From Marsupella aquatica (lineage: Eukaryota; Plantae; Marchantiophyta): DNA of 64,000 bases. This document shows positions 17,790 through 49,845 of the stretch, piece after piece (position 1 is the first letter of the stretch; each line of letters begins with the position of its first letter). The notes below the pieces were generated by a model. The model ran no database searches. It worked only from the letters and a program-made list of their open reading frames with translations, and was not told the DNA's origin. The position numbers were made by a program, and so were the translations under genes. The stretch covers positions 8,988,287-9,052,286 of the forward strand of contig OZ316899.1 in the NCBI GenBank assembly GCA_973895155.1, in the 5' to 3' direction.

Positions 17790-18440
17790 AGTTAGAGTGT
17801 TAAGTTATAGGTCATTGTTCTCTGGTATGTGCATGCGGTGTGACAAGTGGTCCTCTAGAGCGTGTGATCCAAACATGTGTAGACACCAATTGCACCGGTG
17901 GTGGGGTCTGGGAGGCCAGGACAAGTGACATCACCAGGCACATTGCAGGATGGCAAGTGGTTCTAGATGATACATTGTGCTCTATGAAAATATCAACATC
18001 CAAGAGAACGGTCATCCAACTTTGGGCTAGAAGCCCTATAGGCAGGACAGTCATATTGGCAACTGTGCACACACCCTTGGCGCCTAATCTGTGGTGGGTC
18101 ATGTACAAGAGACACAAATACCAAGGATGTTAGGAAGGGTAATGAAGCAGGTAGAGGCTGGTTGTAGTTGTTCCTGGCAACAATAGGGTACTCAAAGTAC
18201 CATGCAGACTGGGCTGGAAGGATCCCAAGTCTGACATACTCAAGGTGCAACATCTCTGCCTTGCGCGCAAGGCGCACATGTTTAGCATTGCGGGTCCTCA
18301 CCATAAGTGTTGCCTTTGTTGTGATGTCCTTTGTTCATGTCCTTTGATCAGCAAGGCAAGCAGGAGGCCGACTTGCCTCGCCAATAACAACCAACCTAAA
18401 CTTATCAGTTCCCACTCATTGTCTCATTTCCTTGGTTGTA
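17790..18440 (-). pseudogene. Unknown Cys/His-rich protein, homologous to the cargo ORF at 28344-28790
   Basis: LPAQSAWYFEYPIVARNNYNQPL...GCVHSCQYDCP...AQCII*NH...DVTCP; reads through stops consistent with CGA>TGA and TGG>TAG changes. Confidence 0.65.
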
Positions 18441-21419: not shown

Positions 21420-24400
21420 ATTTCTTTCATTCCTGCGTGAGGTTGGATAGACTGTGCATTCCGATTGAATCAGTATGTATTTTGTGTATAGATGGTGGTA
21501 ATGACTTCGTGAACATGTCTGCTACATTTTCTTGGCTTGCTATCCACTGAACGTTGATGCTGTCTCCATGCTGTTCATGTGCAAAAAAGAACTTCGGGGT
21601 GATGTGTTTAGTTCAATCGCCTTTAATAAATCCAGCTTGGATCTGATCTATGCAAGGTCTATTGTCTTCATAGATCGTAGTGGGTGATGTTAGGGTAGGC
21701 GTACCTGTATGTTTATGGATGTGGTTGATTACATTTCTTAGTTAGAGGCATTCGCAACTTGCCTCGTAGAGAGCGATAATTTCTGAATGGTTGGATGACG
21801 TTGTTGTTAACGTCTGTTTGGAGCTCTTCCATGAGATGGCGGTTTTTCCCATCAAGAATACATATCCCGTTTGGGACTTTGCGTCATCAATGTCCGACAG
21901 GTAACCTGCGTCCGCGTATCCTGTCATTGTGTTGTTAGTATTTGTATGGTAGAAGAGTCCCAAGTCTGTGGTTCCACAGAGGTAGCGAAAGATCCTCTTT
22001 ATCCCATTTCAGTGCCGAATTGTGGGTTGTGCACTATGACATGCTAAAATATTTATAGCAAAAGCAATGACCGGGCGAGTCTGGTTCGCTAGGAACATTA
22101 GAGCCCCTATCGCAGATAGGTATGGCTTCTCTGAGCCCAATACTGGTTTGTGCTCTTTTCGCTTTCTGAATATGTCTTTGTCCCTGTCGAGGGATCTTAT
22201 GTCCATGGGAGATTTTACCGGTTGAGCTTTGTCCATGTTGAATTGCTTCAACAGTTTTCTCGTATATGTGGTCTGGTGGAGTAAAATTCCTTGTGGCAGA
22301 TGCTCGAATTGTAGGCCAAGACAGAATGTAGTCTGTCCGAGATCTCTCATTTCAAAAATCTTTTTGAGCATGGTTATAGTTTCCAGCATTATTTTACTTG
22401 TACCGAATAGATTGAGATCATCCACGTAAATAGCAATTATGATCATTTCATCTCCTTCTCTTTTTATGAAGAGGCATGGTGCTATTTCTGAATTTTTGAA
22501 GTTTAATGCCATCATTTCTGCCTTGAACCTTTCATACCAGGTTCGACCACTCTGCTTCAGCCCATAAAGTGAGCGAAGCACTTGCACTGCGCATCGTATT
22601 TGTCGCTTTGTGGCATTTTGATTTTCTTGCTTTAGTGCAATTGCTTTGGACATAGTCTGTAGGACTGTCTTATTTGTATGGCCGAATGGGCTTTCCATTT
22701 GTAGGCTTTTGTCTTGTTGGACTGATGTGTCCGTGCTGTGGTATGCAGCTCTCTGTATAAGCTCAGGTGGAGCTTCCATGTGTATTGTTTTATCCAGATA
22801 TCCATACAGGTATGTTGTGACGATATCTAGTTGGTGCATTGGGATTTTATGGTAAAGTGAGAACGCTATAAGGTATATGTACGTGATTATGTCCATAACA
22901 GGTGAGTAGGTGAGGTCGTAGTCTCTCCCTGGTATTTGTGTAAAGTCTTTTGCCACTAGTCTGGCCTTGTGTCTGATGACTTCCCCTTTGGTGTTATGTT
23001 TTTTCACAAATGTCCATTTGTATCCAGTGAGGTGAGTGTCTTGTGGGGCAGGTGTTATTGATCCGAAGACCTGCCTTGATATCAGTGAGTCTAACTCAGA
23101 GTTAATTGCCATCTCCCATTGTGGCCAGTCTGGTTGATTACGTGCTTCTTTGATTGTTTTCGGATCTTCTAGTTCTCTGATTTCTTGTGATATATGTAAA
23201 GCAAAATGTTCATCTAGTTCTGTTGATTTTCTGTCCCATATGTGTCCCGTATTATTGTAGTTGATGGATATCTCTTCTCTTTCCTCTGTTATATGTATTT
23301 CGGTTGTAGATCTTACCGGGTTGTCTGAAGGAGTGGTAGATGTTGCCAACCTTCTTTGTCTTGGTTGTTTGTCCGTGGAGCCAGCTGGTCGTCCTCTCTT
23401 TGCTCTGGGTGCTTGCTCTTAAGGTCGCTCGTCCATTGTTCCTATTCTTGATGGTGCGTTAGCAGTAGGAATGTGGGAGCGGGTTACCTTTGCTGCATCT
23501 GCGAATGAGTCTGGGAGCTGCTCCATCATTTTTGTGAGGTGTATGATTCGTTGTACCTCTATGTCTGCTTGGCCCATTTTGGGGTCGTTCCAGAATTGTG
23601 ACTGGATCTTCCATTGTAGTTCTTGCATTTTCGGGTTGTCCTTCATTTTTTTTGAGCCTGTTGTTGGGAAGATTTCCTCATAAAGTGGCAATCAGAAAAT
23701 CAGGCTTTGAATACATCAGTGGTTGTCGGTTCTAGGTACCTGATGATCGCTGTAGAATCAAATCCTACATATATTCCTTTATTTCTCTAGGGGCCCATCT
23801 TAGTTCTCTTTGGGCCCATAATTGGTACCAGTACTTTTCAGCCAAAAGTTTGGAGGTGTGAGATATTAGGAGTAGTGCCAAGTGCTAGGTGATGTGGGTT
23901 TGTAGAGTTATATGCTGATGGTCGGTAGTTTAGTAGTGCTGCTGCATGAAGGATTGCATGGCCCCGTGCGGAGGTTAGGAGTTTTGATTGCATAAGTAAT
24001 GGGCGGGCTATAGTCTGCAGGCGTTTTATAAGGGATTCAACAATCCCGTTCTGAAAGTGGACGTAAGCCACTGGGTATTGTACATCGATGCCTGCAGCCA
24101 GGCAGAAATCATCGAAGGTCTTTGAGGTAAATTCCCCTGCATTTTCGACCCTCAGTATTTTGATTGGGATCTTGGGGAATTGGGCCTTCAACTTCATTAT
24201 GTGTGCTAAAATCCTTGGGAATACTAAGTTTATTGTGGACAGTAGTAATACTTGGGACCATTTCGATGAGGCGTCTATGATGGCCAGAAAGAATCGGAAT
24301 GGTCCACTCTGTGACTCGATCGGTCCACAGACGTTGGCATGTAATCTTTCTAAAAAGTTGGGGATTTTTGTTTCTATTGTTGCAGGTGATAGTCTCATAA

Positions 24401-25601
24401 TCATTTTGCCTTGGGAACATGCTAGGCAGGGGCCTTTGAGTTGAGTGGGGTGGATGAAAGGTGGTATCCCTTCTGTGTCTCTCAGTATTTTCTGGAACAT
24501 GCTTGTGCCTAGGTGGCCTAGTCTCCTCTGCCATGTTTCGGTCAGTGTTCGTCCAGGGGTGTTAGTGTGATAACTGTATGCTCTGGTGATGTAGAATCCT
24601 AGGGGATAAGCCTCCATTGTTTCTTTTATCTCTGTGCCATTGGGTGTTCTGGCGGTGATGTATAGTACCTCGCCGGTTTTACTGATGCCTGTATGTATAT
24701 GCAGGTTGTTGGCTCTGATGTCTCTAAAGCTAAGGAGGTTCCGAGTAGCTTTAGGGGCAAATATTGCTGATGTGATTTCAATTGTAGTTCCTCTAGGGAG
24801 GATTATCGTGGCCGGGCCATGGCTCTCCTCGATTTGGTTTCTGCCCATAATTGTGGTGACTTTCCGCTCTGAGGGGGTTATCTCTTTGAAGTATTCCCTC
24901 TTTTTCAGGATTGAGTGGGTGGTACCACTGTCCACAATGCATGTGTTGGGGTCTTCTAATGTGAGGTGTGTGCCTTTGTGCTCGAGCATGTGCGTTTCTG
25001 GTTGGATTTCAGGGACATCCAGGAATGCTCCATAGGCCTCCGATTGTGGTGGTTGGAGGCTCTTCTTGTATAAGTCTACTAGGTGTATGGGGGCTCTACA
25101 ATTCTTTTGGATTCTGTAGCATGTGGGTGAGTACTCACTTCTTTCTTGTTGGTTTCCAGTCAGAGTACTGGGGTCTTGGGGCTGATCTATTGTTATTCCC
25201 CTTTTCCAGCTGCCTCTGGTACTTCCAAAACGGGGTCTATCACGGCCTCTGCTTCTGGATGTGGGCTCTCGACTGTTCCGATGGGGGAAGCTCCCCCTGC
25301 AGCCTCTAAAGGAGCCTCTCCCCCTGAATCTTCCGCTGCCCCTTGAGTTACTCTCTCGAAAGTTGTTGTAATATGTTTCTGTGTTTGGGCGAGGTTGTAT
25401 GGACAGGTGCCAGGGGGTCTCTGTTGGGTGTTCTGGAGTAGTAGGAGCTGGTGTTTTCTGCCAATAGCATGTGTGCTATTAGCTCAGAGTATTTGGTAAA
25501 TCTCATATTTCTACACTGAGTTGATAATACTAAGTTCGTGGAATGCAGGGTGGAAAGTGTTTTCTCAATTTGTTCTTCGTCGGTTACGGGTTGTCTGCAG
25601 A
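21420..25601 (-). pseudogene. Copia gag C-terminus, protease, integrase, RT and RNase H (stops/frameshifts)
   Basis: CIVDSGTTH, RLGHLG, QNGIVE, LYGLKQSGR, YVDD, GYADAGY, IKG..KHITPKFF. Confidence 0.93.
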
Positions 25602-25987
25602 TCCTGGGCCCCCAGTGTCATTAATAATGGACCGGACGTGCAAACGGCGGAAGGGTACAAAAAATCCAATTCTGAATTAATTTTTATAATTGAATTATAA
25701 GCAACAAGACCAACTTTTATACGACAATCTCTTTATAACTATTCCTGGGCATCCAAAATGCCGGCCAAAATAATTTGCTTGAAGGGGCCCAGGAATTTGG
25801 CACGCCACGTGTCACAATGAGATTGGTCCACGTGGCACACCCTGAGTTGAGTTAAGTTTAACCAATACTTGTGGTGAATAGGATAAGGAGTTATGAAATG
25901 TATTTTGGCTTTTGGGGTTTGAGGTGAAAGGTTTTTGGGGGGTACATTTATGGGGGGTTTTGGGTGTTTGCAGGGCAAAAGTTCAAG

Positions 25988-26226
25988 GGGAGTACTCAAT
26001 CCCCAAGGGAGTGAGTCAAAGGCCCGGGGCAGGGGAGTACTCAATCCCCAAGGGAATCAGTCAAAGGCCCGAGGCAGGGGCGGAGTACTCAATCCTCAAG
26101 GGAGTGAGTCAAAGGCCCGGGGCAGGGGAGTACTCAATCCCCAAGGGAATGAGTCGAAGGCCCGAGGCAGGGGTGGAGAACTCAATCCTGAAGGGAATGA
26201 GTTGAAGCGGGAGTTGAAGGCCCGAG
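25988..26226. repeat. Tandem 45/48-bp repeats, about 5 copies, near the left end of the P-like element
   Basis: Unit GGAGTACTCAATCCCCAAGGGAGTGAGTCAAAGGCCCGGGGCAGG; no unique spacers. Confidence 0.9.
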
Positions 26227-27599
26227 GTCAAAGCATCCAAGGGAGTGTCAAAGTCGGGGTCGAAGGGAATTAGGGCTCAACTTCGAGCCGCCGGATTTCA
26301 TGTAGTGCTGCCAAGTCGAGAGGTTTGGTTTAGGCTGAAGGAAGTGGAGGCTTGCAGGTTGGCGACGGACCTTGGATGAAGGAAGCTATGGGGCCTGCAT
26401 GAAATGCTGCGGTTGGAGGCCGGCGCTTGATGCTTGCAAAAGTGGCGTTAGATGCAAAGCGGGACATTGCAAGGCTGGGAGGCATGCACTGGCGGGACCG
26501 AATGCGGGAGGCACACCTTTTTCAGAGCTTTGTTTAGGGGTAACTTTCTTTACACTACCCACTGTTTATGTAGAATGATCATACTTTCCATTGTTTATGC
26601 TGCATGCATACACTTTATTAACTATGCAAGCACGAAACCTACTGCCAGCTATTGCCCGAGCTACCATTGATCAGCAAGAAGGGTGAGGCGCGGGCTGAGG
26701 TGTTGCTGTGGCTATTGTTGATCTGCGCTCAGTGTCATTTGTCTGCTGGTCGTCTGTCGAAAGCCCAGCGGGAAGCCCAGGCATCTGAAAGAGGTCCGAC
26801 ATATTTGCTTTTTGCATGCTAAGTAAACTTGTGCTCACTATCTTACTAGGCTTGCTACCTTACTCCGCATAGTATGAGATTCAAATATTTGGGTATGCAT
26901 TGCACTTCTCGCGCCACTTCCGACTATGGTCAACTCCTCTTGTTTTGAAATTGCGGCTCACAGTAGGGCTCAAATGTTCCGGGAAATGTTGCAGAAAATG
27001 TAAGGTGGCGTGCCTTGGGTGTTGTGGAGGCGGCATTGTCTATGTAAGGTCTAGTACCGTTGCTATTGGAGCGCAGCCCCGAGTGCAGCTGCAGACGGTG
27101 TCTCAAGCTATCCGTAGAGGCCCACAAATCCTAGCATGGTGCAATGCAAAAAGGTCTGAATCAGTGTCTTGCCTTTTCACCACCCTGCACACCCTCTGCT
27201 CATTGTCGTTGTCTATGAAATTTTAGTCTTTCATTGTATGCTGAAGCTGTACAAGCTTTTATGTTGAGTCTGGTCGTGGCGTTTTGGCAATCCCGTGTTA
27301 ATTGAATGTTGGCAGGGCCCGACTATGTTTGTTTCTGCTGCCGTTTGGAATATTTGAACACCAATGTGAGCTCCTCATAGGATCAAAACAAAGGTACGTA
27401 GGATTGGACCAAGGTTGAGGACGAAGAAGCAATTATCTCTTATCAGTTTGTTGGATAGTTACAGTGCTCTCTGCAATTTGCACATTGTCGTGCTCATTGT
27501 TGTCATCTTGTTAATGTGGGTGTAGGGCTTCCTGTGTAGGGATTCTTGTGGGCGCCAATGCTTGTGCAGTTCTGGAGTGTTGGTTTCCTTTAGCTAATA

Positions 27600-28790
27600 T
27601 TTTTTGTGATAGCAGAGTTTTTGTTTGGGTGAGCGCTATCCACCTCAAAAGACTGCAAGCGATTGCAGCCCGGGAGGTTTAGTTTTGGACTGTTGAAGAG
27701 CGTCAGCCCGAGCCTGAGTTTGCCAAGCTTGTCTACGGGAAGCGCTGCTGGCAGAGGGAATTGCAAGCAAACAGGTTATTTTCAAATATAATCGTTCTTC
27801 CTGGACATAGTGATTTTCAAATCTATTGGTATATCATTTGCTCTTGTTCAGAGTAGCGGAGCATGGTGAACTCCTATTTGTTGCTCCATCGCGGTTAAAT
27901 TTGTGCTTCAAATGTGTGCAGGAGCTGTTGCTCTTGCTGTCCCGGCATTTTACCTGTCAAATGTGCGGCCCCGTGTGCGACTAGTGCTGCAGAAGTCCCT
28001 ATGGAAGGTGTCTACCACGGGCTGGGTGGAAAGTGTCTACTTTTGGGTAGTTTGCCATTTTTCTTGGAAGGGAAGTGCCACAAACGTGCTTGGGCTGTGC
28101 TTGGACTAATTGGTTCTGCAGGTAATCCAACATCCTCTATCTCAGTTCTCCTCTGTGTTGATTGTACTAGTCTAGGAATAATTGTGTACTAAGGGGCAGA
28201 AATGTTGTTGTTTGATTGAAAAGAAGCTTATGAATCAGTTATTTGCTTATAATTCTCATTTTGGCTTGGTGCTTTGTGAATTTACTCTGACCATATGTCA
28301 TTTTGTACTGCCTCAGGTGTAAATCTTCAAGCTCTCTAGAAGGTTGACTGTATTTGTCACAGAAATGCCTAGGACACGCAGCCATCTTGGAGCAGACCTT
28401 GACGGCAGAGGAGAAAGATTTTGTCTCAAGCTTGTTTCCATGAGGTTGGTTCCTGCCAGTTCTACTGTGGTCTGGGAATATCTGATTGTACACAGGAACA
28501 CCTACAGTCGGCCAATATCTGAGGGCATTCATGTGTTGCCCAAAGGTATTTGCATTGTCCCACTTGTCAATGGCATGGCACAATTAGAGTATACTCTATA
28601 CTCTGGATGTATCCACAGCTGCAAGATGTCTTGTCCAAATTGTCTGGTACGCCTAGGCGATTTTTATAACCAGGCTGGTCAAAACAGAATCAGAAGGTGG
28701 GCGGCTTCTGTAATTTGGAATCATGATGAGCGGGTCTTAGGTCCAGGAGTTGAGACTGTTTGTCCCCGAGCAGAGGATCATTTAGTTTAG
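27600..28790 (+). pseudogene. Spliced Cys-rich cargo gene of unknown function
   Basis: Putative exons ~27600-27774, 27853-28121 (SRLNLCFKC...CQMCGPVCD*CC...CLGC) and 28318-28790 (EYLIVHRNTY...GCIHSCKMSCPNC...IWNH), bounded by GT/AG. Confidence 0.5.
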
Positions 28791-30555
28791 CGTCTACAAT
28801 ATCAAATGTGATTTCATGGCATTTTGAATTTGACTGTGAAATGTGCCTGAATGGCACCAGGAGACGTACGTAAGAAACTATGTACAATTGGATAATTAAC
28901 ACAACTGAAGCCTAACACACCCTAAAGTATTCTACAAAATCTGCCTTAAAGCCTTGGACCCCTCTATTATCCCTCTAATTTTGCAAGGAGTATTTTTCCC
29001 AAGCCCATGCATTCCTTCAACATGATTGTCTATGAATGGAGTTGTTGTCGCAAATGATCTCTTTTGGCCTCCAGCTGAATTCTGACCTGGTCCACAAAAT
29101 CAATGTTCAAATTTATTTTGAACATCCCTGGGGGCATCCTAGTTGTGTCCTAGCCAATCTCTTTGCCAATCTATCTCGGATTTACAGATTGACCTGAAGT
29201 TTTTTCGCTAATTCAAACCTTTGCAATGGGTTGCATTATTCAAATAACCATATTCACCCATTGAAATATCCTAAACAGATTGCAATATTACAAAAACCAC
29301 TTCATTTGTTCACTGAACAGTATTGCGTAACTTTATTTGATCACAAAATTTAGTAATTTGCTCAATAGGTGATTACTGAAATGTGGGCTGAAATGGTAAC
29401 AATTTCAATTGCCCATGCTAATTGTGTTGCATTACTAATAAGACAAATTTGAATTGCTATTCACTTAATGCCTTCTCTTTGCTTCTCACTTTTTATAGGA
29501 GGGAGTGATCATTGCGATAGTATTCTGCCCCTACGCCCCACCTCCAGAAGCATACTCAGTGTGTGGGATGCTGTAAGGTAAGATTTGGGGGATCATTGAT
29601 GTGACGGTATATGGCAATACCTTCCTTTTCCTGGCATTACCCTTCTAAATAGTCCCACTGCAAACTATTTTTAAAGATATTCCTTCAACTCAATTTTTGT
29701 TGTCATTTATGCAGATACTCATACACCTCTAAAGTCAGGAAGGACAGATGCCCCCAAGTGTTGGGTTCCACCATCACAAGGTATCCAATCAATTTTGAAT
29801 TTTGTACTATTTCCTTCTGGATTACTGTATCTATAATGTTTCCACAGACGCTAACTGACAGGCATTGTGTGTTGCTGAGGTAAGTTTGCAAGTTTTTTTT
29901 TTCTAGGTCCTTTTTGCAATTTCCTTTCCTGCTATTGCAAGTGTTGGTTTGCAGGTTCCTCAAGTTCAATGGGACCCCGGGGAACTAATGCCCCCGGAGG
30001 AGACTTGCTGGAAGTGATGACCCAGCAGTCTAGCGCCCCTTGAATGAGAGAGCAGGTTGCCTAGGAGGGGGGGCCTTGGAGTTGATCGCCAATGGCATTC
30101 CTGATTAGAGCCCAAAGTGTTGGGTTTGGTTGGTCCGGGATTGTCAAGGAATCCAATTTCTTGGGGCACTTAGGGTCAATAGGGACTGAGTCCAAGTCCA
30201 CTGTGCTTGAGTGGAGGGAATTGGAGTGTGGGAAACCCAACTGTACATGCCAAGCACACATGAGCATGTTACAGATCCCAATCCCTCCAGTGCTTACATT
30301 GACATTGGAATCCTTGTCAGCAAAGGGTCCACCCTTCCCACCCAAGATTTCTCGGAGAAAACTGACTTGGATCTGTAGAAGCCAATCACCAAGAGCAATG
30401 GCCGGGATGGGGCAAGGCTCTCTTGGGGGTTGGTCCAATGGATGTGGTCTCCCAAGCAGTGGGCTGCTGTAGGTGTTCTGTACTAGGGTATTTGATTGGG
30501 GAGGTCACAATTTAGATTTAATAACTCACTACATTCTGCCTGGTTTTAACAGGCA

Positions 30556-31311
30556 ATGTTGGAGATTTATCCATACCTGAAGTGGATACTACCCGAGCCT
30601 GATTATGGCAGAGGGGATCTTCTGTTACACTTGAAGAGGTTGAATTCAAAATTAACTATGCATATTGCAGGGCTGCTCTGCAGAGAATATTACCTGAATG
30701 TGCACCATTTCTTCGTGGATCAAGGTGATAGAATGATTTACATCAGATGGGACAAATATGTCAAGTACAATAGAAATGTTATATTTCTCCTCATCAAATC
30801 CGGTGCAGTGAAGACCTTCATTCTTCATTGTTGTCATGTGGTGAAGGGGCTTCTGTTGTATGAAGCAAACTTCTACAAGGAAAATAGAAAGGAATGTTTT
30901 GATGAAATCCAGGACGTCATTGATGGTCTGGAAAATCCTCTGGCCACAGAGTTTTTGGTTGACGTAGGTGGGAAACTGTATCCCTACCAAAATAGACAAC
31001 TCCCTCCTTGACCTCTCTGTACATATTCAAGAACGGTAAATGTCTGTGGTCTACCGACTGCTAAAATGGCAGATGGAAGCTTCTGTGGATGTTGCATGTT
31101 AGCCTGTTGTGACATTCCATCACGCAGGGTTTCAGTGGCAGTGGTTCATCCTGACTTGAACCAAGTGGAATTCCATTGGTTGTGGGCTTATCCCCACACC
31201 GTGAAGACTATTCCACATTGGCCAAAATTAAATGTTTGGAGAGAACAACCACATTGGGGAGGTTGGGGTAGTGATAGTGATGAGGAGACTGACAGACATA
31301 GGCGATTTTGA
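30556..31311 (+). pseudogene. Unknown ~250-aa cargo ORF with one internal stop
   Basis: ORFs 30556-31011 and 31066-31311 share a frame and are separated by a single TGA; preceded by the acceptor TTTTAACAG. Confidence 0.5.
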
Positions 31312-31592
31312 ACCTCAGTACTTGATTTTGAAGCGTTACTCATTTCCAAGAGTTAGTGCACCACCCGGATTATTTTTTGTAGTTCTATTGTATATACTTG
31401 GATCAATCTGAAACTTTTGAGATAGTTTTTGCAATCTCAAGAAATGGACTGTAAAGTTTATAGACTTCTATATCAGAATGGTGGTTCTTTTGGTAGTGTT
31501 GATTGTGTAATTGACATGTGTATATTGTGGGGAAATGCTTGAATGTGACATGTCCAATGTATTGCTTGCAGGTCTGAATCTGTGATTTTTTC

Positions 31593-34500
31593 ATGCCACC
31601 TGTGCCTGTATTTCTCGTTGACCATGAGTCAGGGACCAAAAAACACTCTGGGACCATTAGTTGTCTCCCTGGATGGACCTTGGCGGATGCTAGGCAGAAA
31701 ATGGTGGATTTGGAACTTTGGGACTTTGATTTTGATTTTATTGATAGCATGGGAGGTTGTAGATTGCGTGCTGCTTGGGAAAAAGGCAACCTCATTGATG
31801 ATTGTGATGGAAAGATTGTCATCATCCCCAAAATACAGTCTGTGCCCATCCAAAAAGTGGGGGTTGATGTTGGAAGCAGCAATGCCTCCAATGCTGAGGC
31901 TCTGAGTAAGAGTGTTAGTGACGGAGAGTGGCACACTGAAGTTAGGGTAGAGCCTGAGATACAGTGGGAACAACAGGACTTGTCTCTGCCTGTTTCGCCC
32001 CCAACTTCAGCTCTCCCTAATGACCATTTGCATGTAACTATGGATGATGATCCACATGTGAGTTTCCAGTCAACAACTATGTCAAATGATCTGGCCAAGC
32101 TCTGGGTGTCCAGTGTTGACAAGCTGAAGGAGCATATGGTCTTCATAAAGTGTGAGGACCACAAGTGGAGCGTCAAAACTTGGGACAGTGGTGGTGTTCC
32201 ATGTGGTAAGATAGAGTGTTGCGAGTGCAACACTAATATATCTGGATCGTCTAAGTATGTTATGGATAGGGTGTCTGTCCCTAATTGTTTCACAAATTTC
32301 AAACAGAAGCATTTGATCACCCCAAAGCATGCCAAAAATGTGGCACATAATAGTGGGCAGAGAGTAGACTCTGCTGAGATCAGTCGAAGGGCTGCAGCTT
32401 CCTCCTTGAATGATCGTGCAACTCTTGACATGCACGTTCAGATTGTTGAAAGGCTCAATGAATTTGAGCCTGTGTCCAAACCTACCTTCTACATTATAGG
32501 TGATGTTCAAAAGGAGCCTGTGGAGAAGTTAGAGCGGTTCAAAGTGGGGTGCCATTTTTGCTCCGACGTGTTCACTTTGGTACCCAAGCAACGTAATCTA
32601 GAGGTTAATCTGAAATCCCATTGCATCTCTGCAAATCATCTATCAGCAGTGGCTAGGAGTTTGAAGCCACCACCTGGTGCACCAGTACTGTCAAGAAGGT
32701 CAGGCAGACCTCCTAAGGATGATAAGAGGGATGTTTGCCAAAGAACCATTAATGGGTTCTTAACCCGGCAGGCCAGAGATATTGCTTCCAGCAGCCGGTC
32801 AGGAGGGACAGCTGGAGGGAGTGGTTCAGGAGGGAGTGGTTACAATGGAGGTTCAGGCCATTCAGGGGATTTGACAGGAGATCCAGGTAAACCCCACCCT
32901 TGGTCATTGTTGTGTTGGGGATTGTGGCGGAACTCAGTTCAATATGGTGCAATAATCAGGCCTATCAAGGATATCCTATTAGATCAGCCAAAGGTTGACG
33001 GAGCATGGTACGCAGAGCCAGGGGTAAAGGCAGAGGTGTGGTGTCTTCTAGGCCAAGAATCTTGTTTGATAGAAGGACTGTTCAGGCATGTGAATTGTAG
33101 TAGAGCATCACAGCTTCTTGGTGGTTTCCAGGATCTGACTTGTGAAGAATGTTACAATATTGCAAGGATGGGTGACTTCTAGTTAAGAGCCTTTAGAGAG
33201 GACATTGCAGTAGAGAAAAGAGGTACTCAAGGAACCGGTAAGGGTAGATGGTTGGCATATCTCACAATTCCTGAGATTCAAGAAGAAGCCAAAACTTACA
33301 AGAGAAACATTTTGTCTCTCAGAAAACGTCTCAGAGCTCAGCAGCACCGCCTGTGCATGCTGGGGACTCGAGTCCCCACTTTGAGAGATCTTTGCAAAGA
33401 GTCTGGAAGTAGGAAAGACCTGTACAAGTTCTACAATGACATAGTCTTGGCTCACCAACGTGGTGCATTTGGTGGGAGAGAGGCCCTATGGGACTTGTTG
33501 CGAGATGTAGCTGCAAATCTTAATAGGAAGAAAGAAGGAAACACCTTTCAGCCCGATACTAAACTTCTTTCCCAGATATTGTTCTAGCACGATGGCAGGC
33601 GTGTGGTGGACTGCTTGCAAAGTAATGCATTAGGCCCTAGCCTGAACACCCTTCAACGGGACAGGAGAGCCATGGCTGTATTTAGGCCTGGTTTGCATGC
33701 TGACCAGTTCAAGTTTGTTGCCGTTGTATACTCTCAGCTAAAGCAGAGGATGGGGATCACAGGTCCCGTGCCATGCTATTTGGCAGAAGATGAGACCTGT
33801 CTTAAGCGGACAGTCAGGTGATTTCATTTCCCTGACAACCTCCTACAGTAGCAAATTTTTGTCTATTATCCCTCTCCTCAAGAGGTCTGTGGCTGACCAC
33901 TACTGTGGATGGCTGTGTTGCAGATGGCAACCAAAACATGACACATTATTGGGGTTTTGTGGGTTGAAAGAGGATCACCAGTGTGTGATTGGCTTGACAA
34001 TAAAGGTTGGAGCAGGAGAGGAGGGTTTCAGCAAAATCACTGATACCTTTGAGAATTACAAAATTGGAAACCAGGCCAGATGCATAGTAGTAAATCCTCT
34101 TGTAGAAAGATTTCCTAAGTTTTGCATGGTAGCCATGAGTACATGCGGTAAGTTTACTACAGATTTTGTCAGTCAGCAATGGAAGTCCACAGACACTATG
34201 TGGGCTAAATATTGTCTAGACTCAGTTGGTCCTCTCTTGGGTCATGCCAGTGATGGAGATGCACGAAGGAGGAAGCTCATGCTAGAAGACTACACTGGTC
34301 AAAGCTCATATCAAGGGCAAAGACAAAATCTGAGATGGGAAGGTTGGCTATTGAGCCACTCATTCACTACCAATGGATGTCATACACATGCTGTTGGGTT
34401 ACATGATCAGGATTACATTCATAATGGAAAGAAGTTAATAAACCCACTTGATTCTGCTGCTAGAACTTTGAAGCTGGGAACAGAGGTGGCTGGAATTTGT

Positions 34501-36340
34501 AACTTGGACACTCTCCAACGTTTATATAGCAACTTGGATGATGGGTTGAACAAAGGTGACGTTACACGGAATGATAGACAGAATTGGGCTAGTGCACAAC
34601 GACTATGTAGTAGGAAAGTTGTGAAGGCACTAAGAATGCTTCGTGAAAGGAAAGATGCAAGAGTTGAGCAAACTCTGGGGACTGAGATGTATCTCACAAT
34701 ATGTGGTGATTACTTGGATATCTTTATGAATCTGTCTCACCTTGAGAGAACGGGTTGTGCTCTGTGGCAAAGTTAGTTTCTTTTTCCGCCTTTGGCGATT
34801 ATGGTGTTTTCATGGAAATCATAGTGTTGGGGGTAACACAACAACAATCAATTTTACTGTGAGTTGTGTCCCTATGCAGACATTTCTTGATATTCAGATG
34901 TCTGTGCATTTTGTGGTACTTCTAATTATCCAATTCAGGGATAATTTTTGACATTTGCCAAATGTGCCATTGCATTTGACAGGATCTGATGCTTGTGAAC
35001 AGTTTTTCTCCAAAGTAGGAGGAATGAAAGGGAATGAGCGCAGCTATGATTTCTCTGAGTTGATTGACTGTGCAACATCTTTGAATAGGTTGGCTGCAAT
35101 GGATCTCAGCAAAGGGATTAGAGGGGCTGGGAAAAGTCACAAGAAGCATTGCAATATTTGGATGAAACTTCATCTAGTACCAGTACAAGTTAGTACTTCT
35201 GTTAATCCTGTAGACTATACAAGTGTTGAAACTAATGAAAAAATTGTGGTAGACTTGAAAGAAGGGTTAGTTTTAGCCCAGACTGTAGGAATCGAGCTAC
35301 AAATGAATCCATCTACATCTTGTAGGGATAAAGTATGGTGGGACTCACCTTGGGTTACTGAAAAGAAAGGGTCCAAGTTTGGAGGATGGTGTGATGTTGA
35401 AGTGGAGGATCTTGCTCCTGTTGATAGTGATGATGAAGAATCAGGTAGGGAGGTCAGGCAAGCTCCAGCTAATGTAACCATCCCCACACTTCCAACCGAT
35501 ACTGAAATCCCAACAGATATTGCAATGGCAGAAGGTAGTGAAATCATTGAAGATAGTGACAGGCCAAGCATTGCAATAGTAGGAGATCATTGTTCAGCTG
35601 TTATGTCTGAAATGCATTCAGACTTGGTGTATGGACAACCTGTTCTTGACATTAGACCAACTGTGAGTTTTGATGGTCGAACAATGTATAAGAGCACATT
35701 GGTGAGCCAACTAGTTGGCAACCCCAATGTAAGTAAGGATCGTTTGACTAGAGTGAAACAGAGCTTGTACTTCAACAATTTAGTTGATGCACCCAAAGAT
35801 CGAGCAGGAGCAGTCACCATGTTCATGACTGTGGGTAGTGATTGTGGAGTTCTCTTTGCTGATACAACAATACAGACTCGGGGCACAAGAGCCACTGAGG
35901 CTATACAAAAAGCTATGAAAGGGAAAAGAGCAAGGAAGGAACGTGGGACAAGTGGATCTTCTGCCCCCAATCCAAAAAGGCCAAGGGGAGAATCTGTGAA
36001 TGTTACCATAGTCCCTGATGGCCTTAAGTACACTTGGGGGATAGGGAGGGTACAGTGCATCCAACGAAAGTATCAGGGTCGGGTGATGGGTAGAACAAGA
36101 CAATCAGTGGATTTACTTGATAGGCCTGGCGATGAAGAAGCTGTAAGAGTTCGTTTTGAATGGTTTTCAAGGATTGGAAATAGTAAGCACAAATTTGCTT
36201 ACATTGTGATCCTCAATGGATTGATTTGGACTGTGTCATATCAAACGTGACACTATCAGTGAATCCCACAACTCCAAATGTTTTTCATTTGCATCCCTGT
36301 GATGCAAATCTGCTGGATGATTTTGCTAAAGCACATAAGT
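31593..36340 (+). pseudogene. P-element-superfamily-like DDE transposase, intron 33818-33923
   Basis: HTH-like GPSLNTLQR; candidate catalytic AEDET, HASDGD, DYIHNGKKLIN (DxxH), DRQN and GSDACEQFFS. Splicing restores KRTVR|WQPK. Stops at 33180, 33585, 34949 and a frameshift at ~34740. Confidence 0.8.
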
Positions 36341-37147
36341 GATTGGTACGACAGAGATGTAGACAGAGATGGTGAAGTTATGAGAATTCAACCATACAGG
36401 GTGACAAGATTTTCTTGCAGGCAAGTACTTCATATTCTATTTGTTTTTGTGAACAATTTGATATCCCATTTGATATGAAATACAATAGAACATGTGTTCA
36501 TTAGGTTTACATTTTTCAAATAGGAGTTTAGTTGGACAGCTAAATCATTACTTTTCTGATGTAAATTTTTGGATTGTGTTCACTCAGGATCACTTGAAGA
36601 TGAAAGACAACAGGAGGATTCTCTTAGTTGAAATAGGAGTTCTGTAAACATTGAACTGACATGCGTGCAGCATAATGTTTTCTATAGATAGGTACGTTTG
36701 TAAGAGAGTAGTTGTGCAACCATATATGCTCTTATAGTTGAACAATAGGTACATTTGCAAGCACTATCACATGTGCTAAAACAGAGAGACTACACTATTA
36801 CATGTGCTAAAATATAGTGAATCTTCTAGTTAATCTAATTATGTTACTCCATTTAAATAGTCTCTATCTATAATTACCTATTATTTAATGGTATATTTTT
36901 CAGCACTTTTGTATTTACGCAAAAATTTATAAAATTTCAAGACCTTTATAAATGTGACTAATTGTCTATTTATAATTCTGGCAAGGGGCAAATAAATTCT
37001 CTGAAATTAACTTTTTAAGAATAACAAGAGTTATTTTTATGGGTGTCCGAAAATAATAAGGGGTATATGTTAAGGGGTTGTATGCATGTATACCCCTTAA
37101 CTATACAAAGGCTGGGGGCCCAGGGTCTGCAGATGGCCAGTTGGGCC

Positions 37148-37434
37148 CTCGGGGGGTTAACTAAGTGTATATTTTGGGGTACCATGTGCGATCATAGCCT
37201 AATATAAATAGACCTATTTTATAAAGAAAATATTCCAAGAATATTCTCCATTTTCAATATTAATAACCTATTTTACTTTATAAAAAGTATATATTATAAA
37301 ATATTCTATAAACATGAGTTTATAATACCTTCTTTTGCCTCCTACGCTTTAAAAAAATTTAGTTAATTTCTATCAAAATTACCTATTTTGGATCGCACGT
37401 GGTTCCTAAGATTTTTGATAGTCAACCCCCCGAG
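37148..37434. mobile_element. 287-bp MITE with an 8-bp TSD
   Basis: TIR CTCGGGGGGTT(A/G)ACTA; TSD GTTGGGCC (37140-47, 37435-42); AT-rich interior. Confidence 0.9.
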
Positions 37435-37816
37435 GTTGGGCCACTATTCTGAAGAGTTCGCTGTTATATTCAGCTATAGACTTGTGATCTTGCACTCGGA
37501 GGTTCACCCAGTCATGGCGTGCAACGGGCAGGAAAATTGTTCGGGTGTGGTCGAATCTGGAGTGGAGGTCATCCCAGAGTATTCTGGGATTATACTCATT
37601 CATATATTGTTGCTTAAGGGAATCACTCAGGTGGTGTCTGATAAGGATAAGGGCCTTTGCCTTATCTTGGAGGGAGGGGCCAGCATCTGTTAGGATAGTG
37701 TCTTGTAAATTCTTGGCAGCTAAGTGCGCTTTGGCATCTAGTGCCCAAGAGAGGAAGTTGGAGCCGTCGATACTTAAGGCCTGGAAATTGAGTTTCTCTA
37801 TGGTATTAGTTGCCAT
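37435..37816 (-). pseudogene. Copia gag N-terminus of the 20701-38563 element
   Basis: MATNTIEKLNFQALSIDGSNFLSW..., clearly homologous to the start of the 1520-aa polyprotein. Confidence 0.9.
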
Positions 37817-38717: not shown

Positions 38718-41700
38718 TGTTGTGACATTAATTCTATCAAGATCTCAATCAATCCATCAACAACTCCAATTAAAGTATGACCAATTCATGGTCATATATA
38801 TACAATGTTAGTTAGGGTAGTTATGATCCTATTCATCTCCCTTCTACTAATTCGTACCCTTTCAGGTCTCCCTATCCACTGTGTTTGGGATAATATTTGT
38901 ATTACAACACTCCCCCTAGATTGCTAATAATGTATCATTTGGTGCAATCTAATGGGTAATAAATAGTTATCCAAATGTGGTATTTCTAATCTGATTTGCC
39001 ATCAGGTGTAACCTCATTAAAAACCCTCTGCTTTCTTCTAGGGATAAAAAGAGTGTTACCACCCACAATGATGGGCCAGAAAAATTTATAATGTATGTGT
39101 TCTCTATTTTGTAAATAGAGGTAATGGAAGTTCTCGAGTATTGAAAAATATGTGTTTCAGGCTTTGTGCTTTCCTGCTTGTGGTGTATTATGGTTTAGGT
39201 CATGTTGGTTGGTGAGTCGACTTATTGTGGGTACTGTAGTCAAGGTTTCAGGATTGAGAGTCGACGCATGCCGATGCCCTCGCAGTGTTCATTGTGCAGG
39301 ATTCTAGGTAATGGTTTCGTGAAAAGGTCAGCTCTATTTTCTTTGGAAGGGATCCAGACTATGTTGATGTGATCCCCGTGTTGTTCTGCGGTGTAGAAAA
39401 ATTTCGGTGCTATATGTTTAATTCTGTCTCCTTTTATGAAGCCCTTGGTGATTTGATTGACGCAGGGTCGGTTGTCTTCAAAGATCGTTGTTGGAGCTGT
39501 CAGGTTAGGTCTTCCGGCAGAGGTATGGATGTGGTTGACTAGTTGTCGAAGCCAAACACATTCTCTACACGCTTCGTAAAGTGCGATCACTTCAGCATGG
39601 TTCGATGAGGTAGTGGTGAGTGTCTGCTTGGTGCTTTTCCACGATACTGCAGTCCCGCCTTGAAGGAACACATATCCCGTCTGGGATTTAGAATCGTCAG
39701 GGTCGGATAGATAACCTGCATCGGCATAGCCCACGAGTTCGTTAGGAATCGTATTAGCATAGTATAGTCCCATATCTATTGTGCCTTGCAGGTACCTGAG
39801 GACTCGCTTGATGCCGTTCCAGTGGCGGATTGTGGGTTGGGAGCTATGTCTTGCAAGTAAGTTCACTGCGAACGCTATGTCGGGTCTGGTCTGGTTTGCA
39901 AGGTACATCAATGCTCCAATGGCGGAGAGGTAAGGTTTTTCTGGGCCGAGAAGTAGCTCTGAGTCTGTTCTCTTATGAAATATATCCTTTGTAGGGTCTA
40001 ATGATCGAAGGTCCATCGGTGTAGTAACCGGATATGACTTGTCCATATTGAACTGCGCTAATACCTTGCGTGTGTAAGTAGACTGGTGGATAAAGATGCC
40101 TTCCGGTAATGTCTCGATCTGTATACCAAGGCAGTAATTTGGTGTGCCTATGTCTTTCATTTCGAATGCTGCTTTTAGAGTTGCTATCGTGGTGGCAGTG
40201 AGTTCAGGTGTACCAAAAATACTTATGTCGTCGACGTAGATCGCGATAATGATGAACTCATCTCCCATATGCTTGATAAATAAGCATGGAGCTATCTCGT
40301 GATTCACGAACCCAAGAGCGAGCATTTCTGCCTTAAATCTTTGATACCAAATCCTCTCGCTCTGTTTAAGGCCATAAAGAGAGCGGAGGACCTGTACAGC
40401 AATCTTGTTCTTGGATTTCTCTTTGCTGACAGTCTTGTTCACAGGTATCTTAACCTTGGTGGGACAAGATGGTATAGCATCAAGCTCTGTCTGTTTCTCG
40501 AAAACAGTGGGGGTTGATCTGTGGTTGATCAAGTTCGTCTGCATTTTTGTAGGTACAATCTGGTCTACGCCAGACTTTAGATCTGGGGATAATGGGAGAA
40601 GTTTCTCCCCCTGAATATGGAATTTAACTCTGTTAATGAGTTCAGGCGGGGCCTGCATATAGATCTCTGTGTCTAAAACTCCATAGAGATATGCTGTGAC
40701 GACGTCCATCAGGTGCAGCTTAAGTTTATGAATCAGTGAGAAAGCAATCAGGTACCTGTATGTGATGGCGTCCATAACCGGGGCATAGGTGAGGTCATAG
40801 TCCTTTCCCCAAATTTGTGTGTATCCCTTTGCAACCAATCGTGCCTTGTGTCTAATGACTTCACCTTTTGCGTTACGCTTTCTTACCAATGTAATTCTAT
40901 ATCCTGTCAGGTTCATGTCGGGTGGAGCTGGACAGAGTTTGCCAAACACCTGACGGGAGATAAGTGAGTCGAGTTCTGAATTTATGGCTTTTTCCCATAG
41001 GGGCCAATCGTCTCGTTTTCGTGCTTCACTGACTGTGTGTGGCTCGGTTGGATCGGAGGAAATTGTCTCTGATATGAGAAATGAAAAGTTCTCATTAATC
41101 GCGGTGTCTTGGCGGATCCAGACGTTCCCTGTGTGTGCATAGTTCAGGGAAATTTCTTCATTGTCGGCACATGGTTCCGGTATAGTTGAGAGTAAGGTAG
41201 TAGTTGGGCGTTTGTTCCTTAGTGTCCGATCCGTGGAACCTGGTGGGCGTCCTCTTTTTGCTTTGGGTGCTGCTGCAGTTGCTGGCCGTTCGTTGATGGA
41301 GATCCGGGCAGGGGTATTTGCTGCCTCTATGTGGGATTTGGTTACATTTGCAGCGTCATTGAAGGCGTCGGGTAATTTCTCCATCATTTGATGCAGGTGT
41401 AATATGCGTTTTACTTCATCATTGGCTAATTTGGTCCTGGGGTCATTCCAAAACTGGTCCGTAGTTTGCCACTTTAGTTGGGTAGGCTCGAGTATGTCTT
41501 GTATGTCGGTGGTGCTCAATGTAGGGAATATCTCCTCGCGGAATTGACAGTCATTGTATCTTGCTCGGAATATGTCCGCAGTCGTTGGTTCTAGATATCT
41601 TATTATCGAGGGGGAATCAAATCCAACATATATACCGTTCTGGCGCTGTGGTCCCATCTTCGTCCTCTTGGGGCCTAGTATAGGAACCATTACTAAGCAT

Positions 41701-47100: not shown

Positions 47101-47271
47101 AAACCTGATTCTCTTATACATTTGCAAGCTATGAAAACATTATGACAGCAAGTCTACAATACCCTTACTGCAAGCTCCATGGCAAATCAGCAGCAAAAGC
47201 AAACTGACAAAACCTAGATTGGTTTGACAAAATGAAGCAGAAGCAAAACAGGAGAGAGCACAACAGAGATT

Positions 47272-49845
47272 CCCTGGGCCCTTAGCTTAACTAATATTGG
47301 ACCCCCCGTGCGAACAACTCAAGGGGTTTATAAATCCCTTTTTTGAATAATAGTTATAATCGCTTATAATGTAACAACCCTTCGTTTTATTGGGTTCCAT
47401 GTTATAATGAACCAAGGTGATCTAAAAAATAGGGTTCCAGTAGTTTTATGGAAGGGTAAAGCATATGAGGCCGCCACACGTCAATAACTCATTCATCCAC
47501 GTGTCATTACATCCTTGGTTTGGGGTGTGCAAACACATTTGAATTTTTGGGGGATAGGGGCAATTTTGCCTTTAGGGGGTCTCGTTTACCATTTATGGAT
47601 GACCAAAATGGTCTGCCGTCGATCTCTTTGATGCTCTATATCAAACGGTGTAGGGATATATATGGCCTTGTAGGGCCCTCGAAGGAGGAGGTCAAGTTGA
47701 CAACGTTGTTCAATGCGTGTTGCATTAGATGGGGATTCTATGATGCCCCAAGTGATAGAGAGAGTCTCAATCTAGAGTCACTTATGTACCTCGGTGGACA
47801 TTTATCACTTCTAGTGATCAAAGAATTGGTTTAAATGTAATAAGTTTTCCAATGCTTTAGACTCAAAGGATAACTTTCTTGTAAACAATGATGAATATGC
47901 TCAACAAACTATGGGACAAACTTAAGTGCAATGTGGACTTACAGTTTTCATAGATGACAGCGTAGGATGTTTACAACTTAAATTTGGATACTTGTATGCG
48001 TTTGTTTGAGTGGTGGACCTCGCCACCCAGCGCCCTCACCAATCCCAGCACTTGCGCCTAAGTGCCCTTGGTGCCCGAACGCCTCCACGGAATACCTCGA
48101 GCAAGTATCCAAATGCCTCTAGCACCTCCCGCGACCACTCCCATACGAAGCCCACTTGCTCACCTACACGACCACTACTCAACGGTCCTCACTGTCTGCA
48201 CAAGCAACCAAGCACCTCGGTAAGTAACCCCACCGGATCTAGAACTTGCCAAGTCTAGCATCCTAACTCAAGCTCAACAGACGTTGGTAAATAGGTCATC
48301 GATAGGTCCTCCCGATGCCATAAGCCGGAACCAGAACCCACGCCTGCTGTCCGTCCAGGACAACTCCTTCCTTGGGCGCGGCCCGGGTTCCCCCTCGTAC
48401 CTATCCATCACCAACTGACCGCCCTGACCTCAGGACATGCTCATGGCCCAAATAGCGTAGCTTGTCCTAAAGCTTGTCCCCAAGCTTGTCTCAACACACC
48501 GGGACCAGAACGGCCCCGACTCTAACACCGACTCCCGGTTCGCCCCACTGATGGTCTAGGGACCGAGGGCCCTTGGGACTCAGCCTCCACATCTACTTGG
48601 CCTTGCCTCCCCAACGCAAGCTCCCTTGGGAGGCTGAACGCGGCTTGGCTACTGTTCGGCAGGATTTGGCAAACGGGCGAGCTAACACCCGCAAACCACG
48701 AGAACCCATGGCACCCCCAGACCCAGCTGAGCTCAGGAGAGCGTAGTCCTCCTCAAGAGCTTTCCAACGCACCTAAGAAGTCCTCCAACAGACTTCCCGT
48801 TGGGAAGATATCGCCGTTTCCGTTTGGCGGTTTCCCTTAGATTCGCGACCGCCGCGGCTCACGACTGCGGCTCACCCTTAGCCCCCAGGGAGACACCACT
48901 CCCCTCATATATGCTTCTGGAGACCTGCCACCCCCGGACCAGCTTTTGTCCCTAAACATTTGGCCCCCAACCCGGATCCCATCGCGCATAATGGGCGCGC
49001 CACCAACTGGCAACGCCCATAACTTTCTTGATAGGCATCCGCAAGCGGAGTGCCTTAGCCGGTTGTGACCGGGCCGACCCACTGCTCATGCCTAGGCCCT
49101 CAGGTTTGATCGCCGCTCAGGGCCCCCGACCGGCCCAACCCGGCTCGGGCCACAACTTGCGCCCCAAGCGTCCGTTGCCAATGGCGTCAACTCCATTGGC
49201 CTTGGGCCCAAGAGGAGCTCACTTCCAAGCCCTCAGAACTCAAAGCCCATCCGACGGTCCGGACGGCCATCCATGAGCCCGACCCATTTCCCCTTGACCC
49301 GACCAGCCATAGGCTAGTCCAAGTCCTTAGTTTGTGTCCCCAGCTTGGCCCCTTGCCTCGCTAGTGCCACATCTCATTGCCCACAAGTCTCCCCATGCTA
49401 AGTCCTCCCCGGATGGCCTATCCGGGCCTGGACCATAAGGGAGCTCGGCGTCGGAGTCAGCGATGCCGGAGCTAAGTGTTAAGGTAGTCGAGTTCCGCGA
49501 CTGTTTGACTCTTAAATGCCTTGACTCCTACCTTCTTGCGAGGAAGTGTGTACATAAAGAATATGTTGTTCCTGTTTTTGCTTTTGATAATGTGAAATGT
49601 TTATTCCAATCTGTTTGACTTAGAATCTCTTTGACAGGATTTTTTTTATAACACCTGAAGAGCATATTTAATGTCATTTTGATGAAGATTATAATAGCCC
49701 AAAGGGCTTTTTGAATGACCCAAAAGTAATTTATTAATACTAATAAGAGTTTTTTAAAAGGGCAAAAAATAGTACTGAAGGGGTTTGGAGGGAAGGGGCG
49801 TTCACAGACGGGTTCCATTAATATACACGAAGTAAGGGCCCAGGG
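47272..49845 (+). mobile_element. Non-autonomous relative of the P-like element (~1.07 kb without the nested solo LTR)
   Basis: TIR CCCTGGGCCCTTA at both ends; perfect 8-bp TSD CAGAGATT; first ~65 bp align with 25602-25670. Confidence 0.9.
48009..49502 (-). mobile_element. Solo LTR (AGT...ACT family)
   Basis: Perfect 5-bp TSD GTTTG (48004-08, 49503-07). Confidence 0.92.

Follow-up and report, generated by a model that had tools for sequence, protein, structure and literature searches.

A decayed cut-and-paste transposon in a liverwort genome, probably from a deep THAP-less branch of the P/THAP9 group

Does an 11.5 kb stretch of the genome of the liverwort Marsupella aquatica belong to the P-element superfamily, and does its length reflect a cargo of accessory genes? 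P elements have been recorded in animals, a few fungi and protozoa (PMC7776569, PMC5751038, PMC3698922), and THAP domains are stated to be restricted to animals (PMC7776569). In a survey from 2025, 1,007 plant genomes were screened for P elements with Pfam models, and active elements were reported only from seven other superfamilies (PMC12973397); we found nothing specific in the literature on P-like elements in bryophytes. The stretch lies at positions 25602-37125 of the window, the 64,000 nt of contig OZ316899.1 that were analysed. An earlier note on this DNA had read it as a giant P-like transposon with a spliced transposase and accessory genes of its own, and had suggested comparing the transposase with P transposase using Foldseek and checking the conservation of the cargo.

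The exact boundaries claimed in that note are borne out. The element is flanked by identical copies of the 8 bp sequence TCTGCAGA, at 25594-25601 and 37126-37133, and begins with the terminal inverted repeat TCCTGGGCCCCCAG (25602-25615, plus strand), which agrees with the right end (37112-37125) at 13 of 14 positions, the first base on the left being T rather than C. The 13-mer core of these ends occurs exactly twice in the window, in inverted orientation, against an expectation of 0.16. Removal of the element and one repeat in silico restores a minus strand reading frame, as had been claimed for the host, and across the junction this frame gives an ungapped alignment with residues 121-173 of a Copia gag, the reference being an intact Copia at 39240-43802 of the window. 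Therefore the 'host' of the 11.5 kb element proves to be another transposon, a Copia retrotransposon; its gag lies at 37406-37816 on the minus strand, and the same comparison places its pol continuation at 23838-24989 and 22009-23349, also on the minus strand. The stretch is a real cut-and-paste transposon, which entered the gag region of a Copia and duplicated 8 bp in doing so.

The transposase gene occupies 31593-36342 on the plus strand and has about 1,550 codons. Exon 1 (31593-33817), identified by homology and motifs, runs from an N-terminal extension through the first catalytic Asp: it encodes two CxxC...Hx5H fingers in the extension (32217-32330 and 32550-32639), a Cys-rich module (about 33006-33158), a coiled coil followed by the HTH motif GPSLNTL (33633), and the Asp itself within AEDET (33783). 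Exon 2 (33924-36342), for which the folds of relatives were also used, encodes SDGD (34249), DQDYIH (34405) followed by a helical insertion domain, the E motif SDACEQFF (34982) followed by a disordered acidic linker, and a C-terminal beta domain (about 35990-36339). These HTH and catalytic motifs are present just where the earlier note had placed them, and the D, D, H and E residues, invariant in the family alignment, are all intact in the window copy. Between the exons is a 106 nt GT..AG intron in phase 2 (33818-33923), an interval that is not present in the open reading frame of the Calypogeia homologue, and in which other copies have indels of lengths not divisible by three.

A spliced transposase of roughly 1,500 codons had been proposed; the size holds, but there is only this one intron, the other breaks being three in-frame stop codons (33180-33182 and 33585-33587 in exon 1, 34949-34951 in exon 2) and two frameshifts (near 34732 and 36203). 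With these five defects the window copy is therefore dead, a pseudogene rather than an intact spliced gene. Other copies, present in sequencing runs, have sense codons at 33180-33182 and extra letters at 34732 and 36203, and at least three of the five defects were not found in them.

The family to which this copy belongs has 686 representative clusters of homologues at E ≤ 1e-3, spread over liverworts, a fern and marine animals. In a quick tree, from which the window's own row was left out, the plant rows form one clade with an SH-aLRT of 100. Calypogeia fissa has an intact homologue (P0211), encoded by a single open reading frame of 1,529 aa, which aligns with the window gene from 31593 to 36330 at 49-57% identity, running across the stop codons; another relative (P0197) is found as two copies that are 99.9% identical, and some relatives bear a Ulp1 domain (PF02902). 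All five elements that could be delimited have 8 bp duplications (TCTGCAGA, CAGAGATT, TGTACAAG, GCCACACG and the crossed pair GCTTTGAG/TGTAAAGG). The ends of elements in the family read (T/C)CCTGGGCCC or CYCGGGGGGG, and the CA start that is the rule for P-element termini was not seen among them. One of the five sits in the same window, 10 kb from the main element: a non-autonomous relative of 2,574 bp on the plus strand at 47272-49845 (47264-49853 with its duplications), which has the ends CCCTGGGCCCTTA and the duplication CAGAGATT at 47264-47271 and 49846-49853, and within which no transposase similarity was detected.

The two exons were searched separately, and whole-protein folds were predicted for the natural relatives P0008 and P0153 rather than for the window's own broken protein. 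The P0008 model has a pLDDT above 90 over residues 190-730, and its best Foldseek match, in the comparison that had been suggested, is the P-element transposase (6p5a/6pe2; E 2e-11, TM 0.65-0.67). With VIA, 403 of 442 residues align to 6p5a_A over chain positions 135-565 (Z 24.5, rmsd 4.6); the next best families, in a ranking that covers solved structures, of which Kolobok and MULE have none to compare, are Transib (Z 11.1), RAG1 (9.6) and the hAT transposase Hermes (8.1). This match covers the insertion domain as well as the HTH and RNase H core, and no other transposase reaches half its strength. The model of P0153, which is 54-63% identical to the window protein, matches P transposase over chain positions 308-565 with a Z of 14.4, the sole match with Z ≥ 8 among 48,161 chains. 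Upstream of the core, a coiled coil and then an HTH are predicted, corresponding to model helices at 65-129 and a helical domain aligned from chain position 135.

Sequence profiles give fainter signals. The P HTH model PF12017 matches two of 33 members, at best with 6.4e-5; PF21787 reaches 0.0022 at best among the relatives, short of its cut-off, and is carried by the nearest ESM Atlas clusters; PF21788 matches weakly, at the expected position, both a window open reading frame and P0211 (E 0.13-0.14). None of the Pfam P-family models reaches threshold on the window protein or its full-length relatives, nor did PDB-sequence profile searches with two family alignments find P transposase. From the predicted fold, the domain order and the 8 bp duplications, the P-like assignment made in the earlier note appears sound, and we consider the element, with a probability of about 0.78, to be a decayed, once-autonomous cut-and-paste transposon with a transposase from a deep, THAP-less branch of the P/THAP9 group.

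It might instead be argued that the family is a separate, unnamed superfamily that shares only ancestry with P, membership of P as usually defined failing on several counts: identity to the Drosophila P transposase is only about 15%, the Pfam P models are not significant, Pfam scans of the window's open reading frames and of the scanned relatives found no THAP domain, the ends open with CCCTGG or CYCGGGG and not CA, and the family, with its 686 clusters, is large and self-contained. The absence of both THAP and the CA start had been remarked on from this one element, and it extends across the family. However, the fold match to P, which is not confined to the RNase H core but includes the HTH and insertion domain, exceeds any other more than twofold, the duplication length and domain order are those of P, and a few members do match the P HTH model. 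A separate superfamily therefore seems unlikely to us.

Within the proposed branch of the P/THAP9 group, the N-terminus has a Cys-rich module in place of THAP, and the liverwort copies are extended N-terminally by about 460 aa; the only homologue of this extension that was found is one Calypogeia protein, and a PDB search returned none. At the other end, the C-terminal barrels of the P0008 model (residues 889-991) and the P0153 model (residues 510-671) have middling matches to BAH-type domains, with Z up to 8.1 and of 6-7.4 respectively, and 30 of the 33 matches to the P0153 domain in two structure searches are chromatin readers (BAH, chromo barrel, Tudor and PWWP). On this modest match, the domain resembles chromatin readers of the BAH or Royal-family type. 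We infer a protein that starts with the N-terminal extension and its two zinc finger-like motifs, continues through the Cys-rich module, coiled coil and HTH to an RNase H-type DDE core, interrupted by an all-helical insertion domain where the P-element enzyme has its GTP-binding domain, and finishes with a C-terminal domain and disordered linker leading to the beta-barrel like those of BAH/Royal-family readers.

Upstream of the gene are about 6 kb in which the earlier note saw some 5 kb of further spliced open reading frames. The left subterminal region (25602-25840, plus strand) is conserved in three aligned elements and contains the motifs ACGTGCAAAC (25636-25645) and AAGGGTA (25651-25657), a candidate transposase-binding site and a pair also present in the relatives L004 and L006; the right subterminal region, which with the right inverted repeat spans 36900-37125 on the plus strand, is likewise conserved between elements. 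Then come a tandem array of about 4.7 copies of a 45-48 nt unit (25986-26202), internal DNA without a supported gene that is not common to the Calypogeia element (26203-29869), and a conserved non-coding block upstream of the gene (29870-30450, plus strand), which has 70% nucleotide identity to Calypogeia.

Were the element a cargo-carrying giant, these 5-6 kb would hold spliced orphan genes for accessory proteins specific to the lineage. The conserved block does carry conserved splice-like signals (GAG/GTAAGT and TTGCAG/GT), in the Calypogeia element too the gene is preceded by 4.2 kb, and a weak paralogue of the best upstream open reading frame (28365-28787) lies at 17993-18304 on the minus strand, with 32% identity over 68 aa and a match to GC[IV]HSC..CP. 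However, that open reading frame has no database homologue, and Pfam searches of every sizeable frame segment of the element found nothing significant. Comparison with four related loci by tblastx and blastn limited the shared upstream DNA to the terminus and the 600 bp block, and these are all that the Calypogeia element shares of it. The block itself has no conserved open reading frame on either strand (the minus strand gives 48% identity over 58 aa only, and the Calypogeia plus strand frame that was tried has eight stops) and no match in Rfam; it is probably a promoter or a 5' UTR, in the latter case possibly with an exon and an intron. Relatives of 6.8-7.7 kb lack most of this upstream DNA, and the genes of L004 and L006 start only 0.4-0.9 kb from the left end. 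Accessory genes are accordingly improbable, and the 6 kb are most likely non-coding, consisting of the repeat array, lineage-specific filler and the one conserved block; the extra length of the element comes from a double-size transposase and this apparently non-coding DNA.

Transposition of such a THAP-less P-type element would begin with an intact transposase from another copy binding the inverted ends, which begin with CYC, and the candidate subterminal motif, in which ACGTGCGAAC is followed after a few bases by AGGGTA. The protein would then pair the ends as a dimer, excise the element and join it to target DNA with an 8 bp stagger, and its reader-like C-terminal domain may direct insertion to particular chromatin. 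To our knowledge, P-type transposases are the only ones known to need GTP, and the present family would, by analogy, offer a plant-borne branch of them; it may also provide an example of fusion between a DNA transposase and a chromatin reader. P0197, with its two near-identical copies, and P0211, with its 1,529 aa reading frame, represent apparently intact, recently active copies for experiments. The family also accounts for multi-kilobase repeats that annotation of liverwort-type genomes would otherwise leave unclassified. Its escape from the Pfam P models would explain its absence from the survey of 1,007 genomes (PMC12973397), and the literature searched fits with the family being undescribed. 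A wider proposal, which we advance tentatively and rate at somewhat below even odds, is that land plants (liverworts and at least one fern) have their own Pfam-invisible clade of the P superfamily, with a double-length transposase, other zinc modules replacing THAP and a BAH/Royal-like reader that guides insertion, and that the GTP-cofactor machinery is ancient and widespread rather than essentially animal.

Among other known systems, hAT elements also make 8 bp duplications, and the DxxH motif after the second Asp occurs in them too, but the fold match to Hermes is weak (Z 8.1 against 24.5 for P transposase) and the family has neither the hAT dimerisation domain nor any other hAT Pfam match; a hAT origin, rejected on the fold, is very improbable indeed. 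Zisupton/KDZ elements, which were considered for their 8 bp duplications and the Ulp1 domain of some relatives, and which likewise have long transposases, were dropped because there is no KDZ Pfam match, nor one to CxC, in the window's open reading frames or the scanned relatives, and because the fold is P-like. Kolobok, which has a TTAA target duplication and a THAP domain, was set aside, the duplications here being 8 bp without TTAA and THAP being absent. Transib/RAG1 ranks second among the fold matches, with Z 9-11 over the region that also matches P, RNase H core and insertion domain included; however, this match is far weaker than that of P, and Transib makes 5 bp duplications.

Drosophila P differs from the present family in having a THAP domain, a transposase of 751 rather than about 1,550 aa without the N-terminal extension and the C-terminal reader-like barrel, and a length of 2.9 kb rather than 7-11.5 kb, as well as in the sequence of its ends; the present family, for its part, occurs in land plants and escapes the Pfam models built for P. 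Yet Drosophila P and vertebrate THAP9 share with it the 8 bp target duplication, the short inverted ends with internal motifs resembling binding sites, and the succession of coiled coil, HTH and an RNase H core divided by a helical insertion domain (for the P domain scheme, see PMC7776569), and they are, by a wide margin, its closest structural match (6p5a, 6pe2).

The element at 25602-37125 is bounded by terminal inverted repeats (25602-25615 and 37112-37125) that match at 13 of 14 positions, and beyond these by direct copies of an 8-bp target-site duplication, TCTGCAGA (25594-25601 and 37126-37133). The 64-kb window has just two occurrences of the 13-nt core of the inverted repeats, inverted relative to each other, where 0.16 would be expected. 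Both kinds of repeat had been proposed in the earlier note and are borne out, with one small correction: the outermost left base is T, not the C predicted from the right end. It had also been suggested that removal of the element restores a host reading frame. Joining the flanks in silico, with one copy of the duplication retained, does generate a 103-aa minus-strand ORF that spans the junction and aligns across it, without gaps, to gag residues 121-173 of another Copia ORF in the window; the recipient, however, is not a host gene but a Copia LTR retrotransposon, of which the gag (37406-37816), Pol beta-barrel and pre-integrase (23838-24989) and reverse transcriptase (22009-23349) regions survive on the minus strand. 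The insertion into this Copia is clean, with an 8-bp target duplication. The related gag-pol ORF (39240-43802, minus strand; 1,520 aa) is apparently intact, and no nucleotide similarity was detected between the two Copias at the insertion site.

The long open frames of the element are all plus-strand and fall within 31593-36342. The liverwort Calypogeia fissa has a relative, P0211, of 1,529 aa encoded by one uninterrupted ORF, which aligns with the window from 31593 to 36330 at 49-57% identity. Within this alignment, the window gene has a 106 nt, phase 2 intron with canonical GT..AG boundaries (33818-33923, plus strand), joining ...TV(R) to (R)WQPK, that is missing from the Calypogeia gene; there are also three in-frame stop codons in well-aligned plus-strand sequence (TAG at 33180 and 33585, TGA at 34949) and frameshifts near 34732 and 36203. 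Contigs from four public runs (three organisms), in which the transposon family is highly repeated, were placed on the transposase stretch. Other copies have sense codons at 33180-33182, two additional letters at 34732 and four at 36203, and the differences between copies are mostly transitions. Since the P0211 alignment and the other copies expose the nature of each break, the window copy is, judged from its sequence, dead: a pseudogene with one intron. Hence the long spliced transposase proposed previously stands as regards a single intron, whilst the multiple splicing does not, the other breaks being three stops and two frame slips. The coding sequence also contains a 20-nt inverted repeat (32957-32976 and 36109-36128), with arms approximately 3.1 kb apart encoding RPIK(D/E)I and DLLDRP; its counterpart at the Calypogeia locus (L001, 11332-11351 and 14353-14372) is conserved at the nucleotide level, and its core, AGGCCTATCAAG, is absent from more distant loci.

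The folds of whole proteins were predicted for natural relatives, not for the window's own protein. An AlphaFold2 model of P0008, which is 36-41% identical to the window core, was built with 33 family sequences and has a pLDDT above 90 over residues 190-730. The first Foldseek match to this model was the Drosophila P-element transposase (E 2e-11, target TM 0.65-0.67), followed by RAG1 (7e-5) and Transib (1e-3). VIA-align gave Z 24.5 against P transposase (rmsd 4.6, 403 of 442 residues, chain 135-565), an alignment that takes in the HTH, RNase H core and insertion domain, with Transib (Z 11.1), RAG1 (9.6) and Hermes (8.1) behind. A model of P0153, a much closer relative (54-63% identical to the window), was compared with 48,161 chains, of which P transposase alone exceeded Z 8 (Z 14.4, chain 308-565). 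The element is genuine, and its assignment as P-like, first made in the earlier note, is supported by the fold of these relatives, by its architecture and by the length of its duplications.

The claimed catalytic motifs are all intact in the window: the Asp of AEDET, SDGD, DQDxIH and the Glu of GSDxCExFFS are invariant, or nearly so, in the family alignment. When 1.84 billion representative proteins were scanned in full by HMMER, with the 328-aa D-D segment as query, 686 clusters were recovered at E<=1e-3, 51 of them at E<=1e-30, with many members of 1,000-1,600 aa. Those members that carry a species or genus name belong to the liverworts Riccia sorocarpa and Calypogeia fissa, the fern Adiantum nelumboides, and the animals Amphiura, Mytilus, Clytia and Desmophyllum; a precomputed P-family Pfam domain is recorded for none of them. 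Pfam gave no significant match to any piece of the element, the best being TNP-like_GBD (E 0.14) at the expected position, and P transposase was not recovered when PDB sequences were searched with profiles. PF12017 matches two of 33 members (best 6.4e-5), PF21787 matches one (0.0022) and is carried by the nearest ESM Atlas clusters, and PF21788 matches weakly at the expected position in both the window ORF and P0211; these faint sequence links point towards P transposase, as does the structure. A Pfam-model screen of 1,007 plant genomes covered 17 superfamilies including P, and the active elements that it reported came from just seven of the others (PMC12973397); a screen of this type would miss the P-like family of the window.

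The 5,991 bp of element DNA 5' of the start codon had been thought to carry around 5 kb of accessory genes. Outside the terminus, only 29870-30450 is shared with the Calypogeia element (L001 9115-9701; 70% nucleotide identity), at a distance of 1.1-1.7 kb 5' of the start codon. This block has no ORF conserved between the two on either strand, and contains conserved splice-donor- and acceptor-like signals (GAG|GTAAGT and TTGCAG|GT); it could represent either a 5' UTR interrupted by an intron or a promoter. The remainder contains a 45-48-nt tandem array and frame segments without Pfam matches, the best candidate ORF (28365-28787) having no database homologue. An ORF outside the element (17993-18304, minus strand), itself without a Pfam match, is a weak paralogue, similar to 28365-28640 with MxRTR... 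and GC[IV]HSC..CP in common. In 6.8- and 7.7-kb relatives the gene starts just 0.4-0.9 kb from the left end. On these grounds the idea of a cargo-carrying element is not supported, and its size is read as the sum of a very long transposase and lineage-specific DNA that is probably non-coding.

Four further elements were delimited, and 8-bp duplications are present in all five. One is a non-autonomous 2,574 bp element in the window itself, at 47272-49845 (47264-49853 with its duplications, CAGAGATT); its 13-nt inverted ends, CCCTGGGCCCTTA, match perfectly, and no transposase remnant is present inside it. The Calypogeia element is 10.1 kb long (ends CCCTGGGCCCTCACTCTT, duplication TGTACAAG), and a JGI metagenome element, the 1,307-aa protein of which is present on 12 contigs, is 6.8 kb (ends CYCGGGGGGGGCACT, duplication GCCACACG). 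The 7.7-kb element exists as two inverted copies, 99.86% identical and approximately 50 kb apart on one contig (L006 9146-16887 and L007 9147-16886); their duplications, GCTTTGAG and TGTAAAGG, are exchanged between the copies, the footprint expected if recombination between them had caused an inversion. Ends of around 240 bp (left) and 200 bp (right) are conserved among the two window elements and that of Calypogeia, and the motif pair ACGTGCGAAC ... AGGGTA is also present close to the termini of more distant elements. In a quick, incompletely searched, midpoint-rooted tree of 54 rows, the window's own not among them, all plant rows form one clade (SH-aLRT 100) separate from the animal and metagenome rows.

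At the start of the family's shared core is a small Cys-rich module (W...C...CxxC), and residues 1-875 of P0008 align with 460-1338 of P0211. Ahead of this module, the liverwort proteins have around 460 additional residues with two CxxC...Hx5H motifs; this extension has one homologue within the length band of the search, another Calypogeia protein, and no match in a PDB search. The C terminus is a predicted beta-barrel following a disordered acidic linker. Matches to the barrel in both models are led by BAH domains (EBS, ORC1, DNMT1, ZMET2, AIPP3, DIM2 and MTA1), with chromo-barrel, Tudor and PWWP domains next (Z 5-8), P transposase matching another part of the protein; the resemblance to BAH-type domains is suggestive only. 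The relatives P0016, P0049, P0259 and P0263 differ in their extra domains, those seen across the family including PTM/DIR17-like Tudor (P0016), SAP (P0049) and Ulp1 protease. As members bear Tudor, SAP or Ulp1, the C-terminal modules vary, and accessory modules have been swapped repeatedly across the family. The family further departs from canonical P elements in having no detectable THAP domain. Outside animals, P elements are recorded in only a few fungi and protozoa (PMC5751038, PMC3698922), and THAP domains are restricted to animals according to the review that sets out the P domain scheme (PMC7776569).
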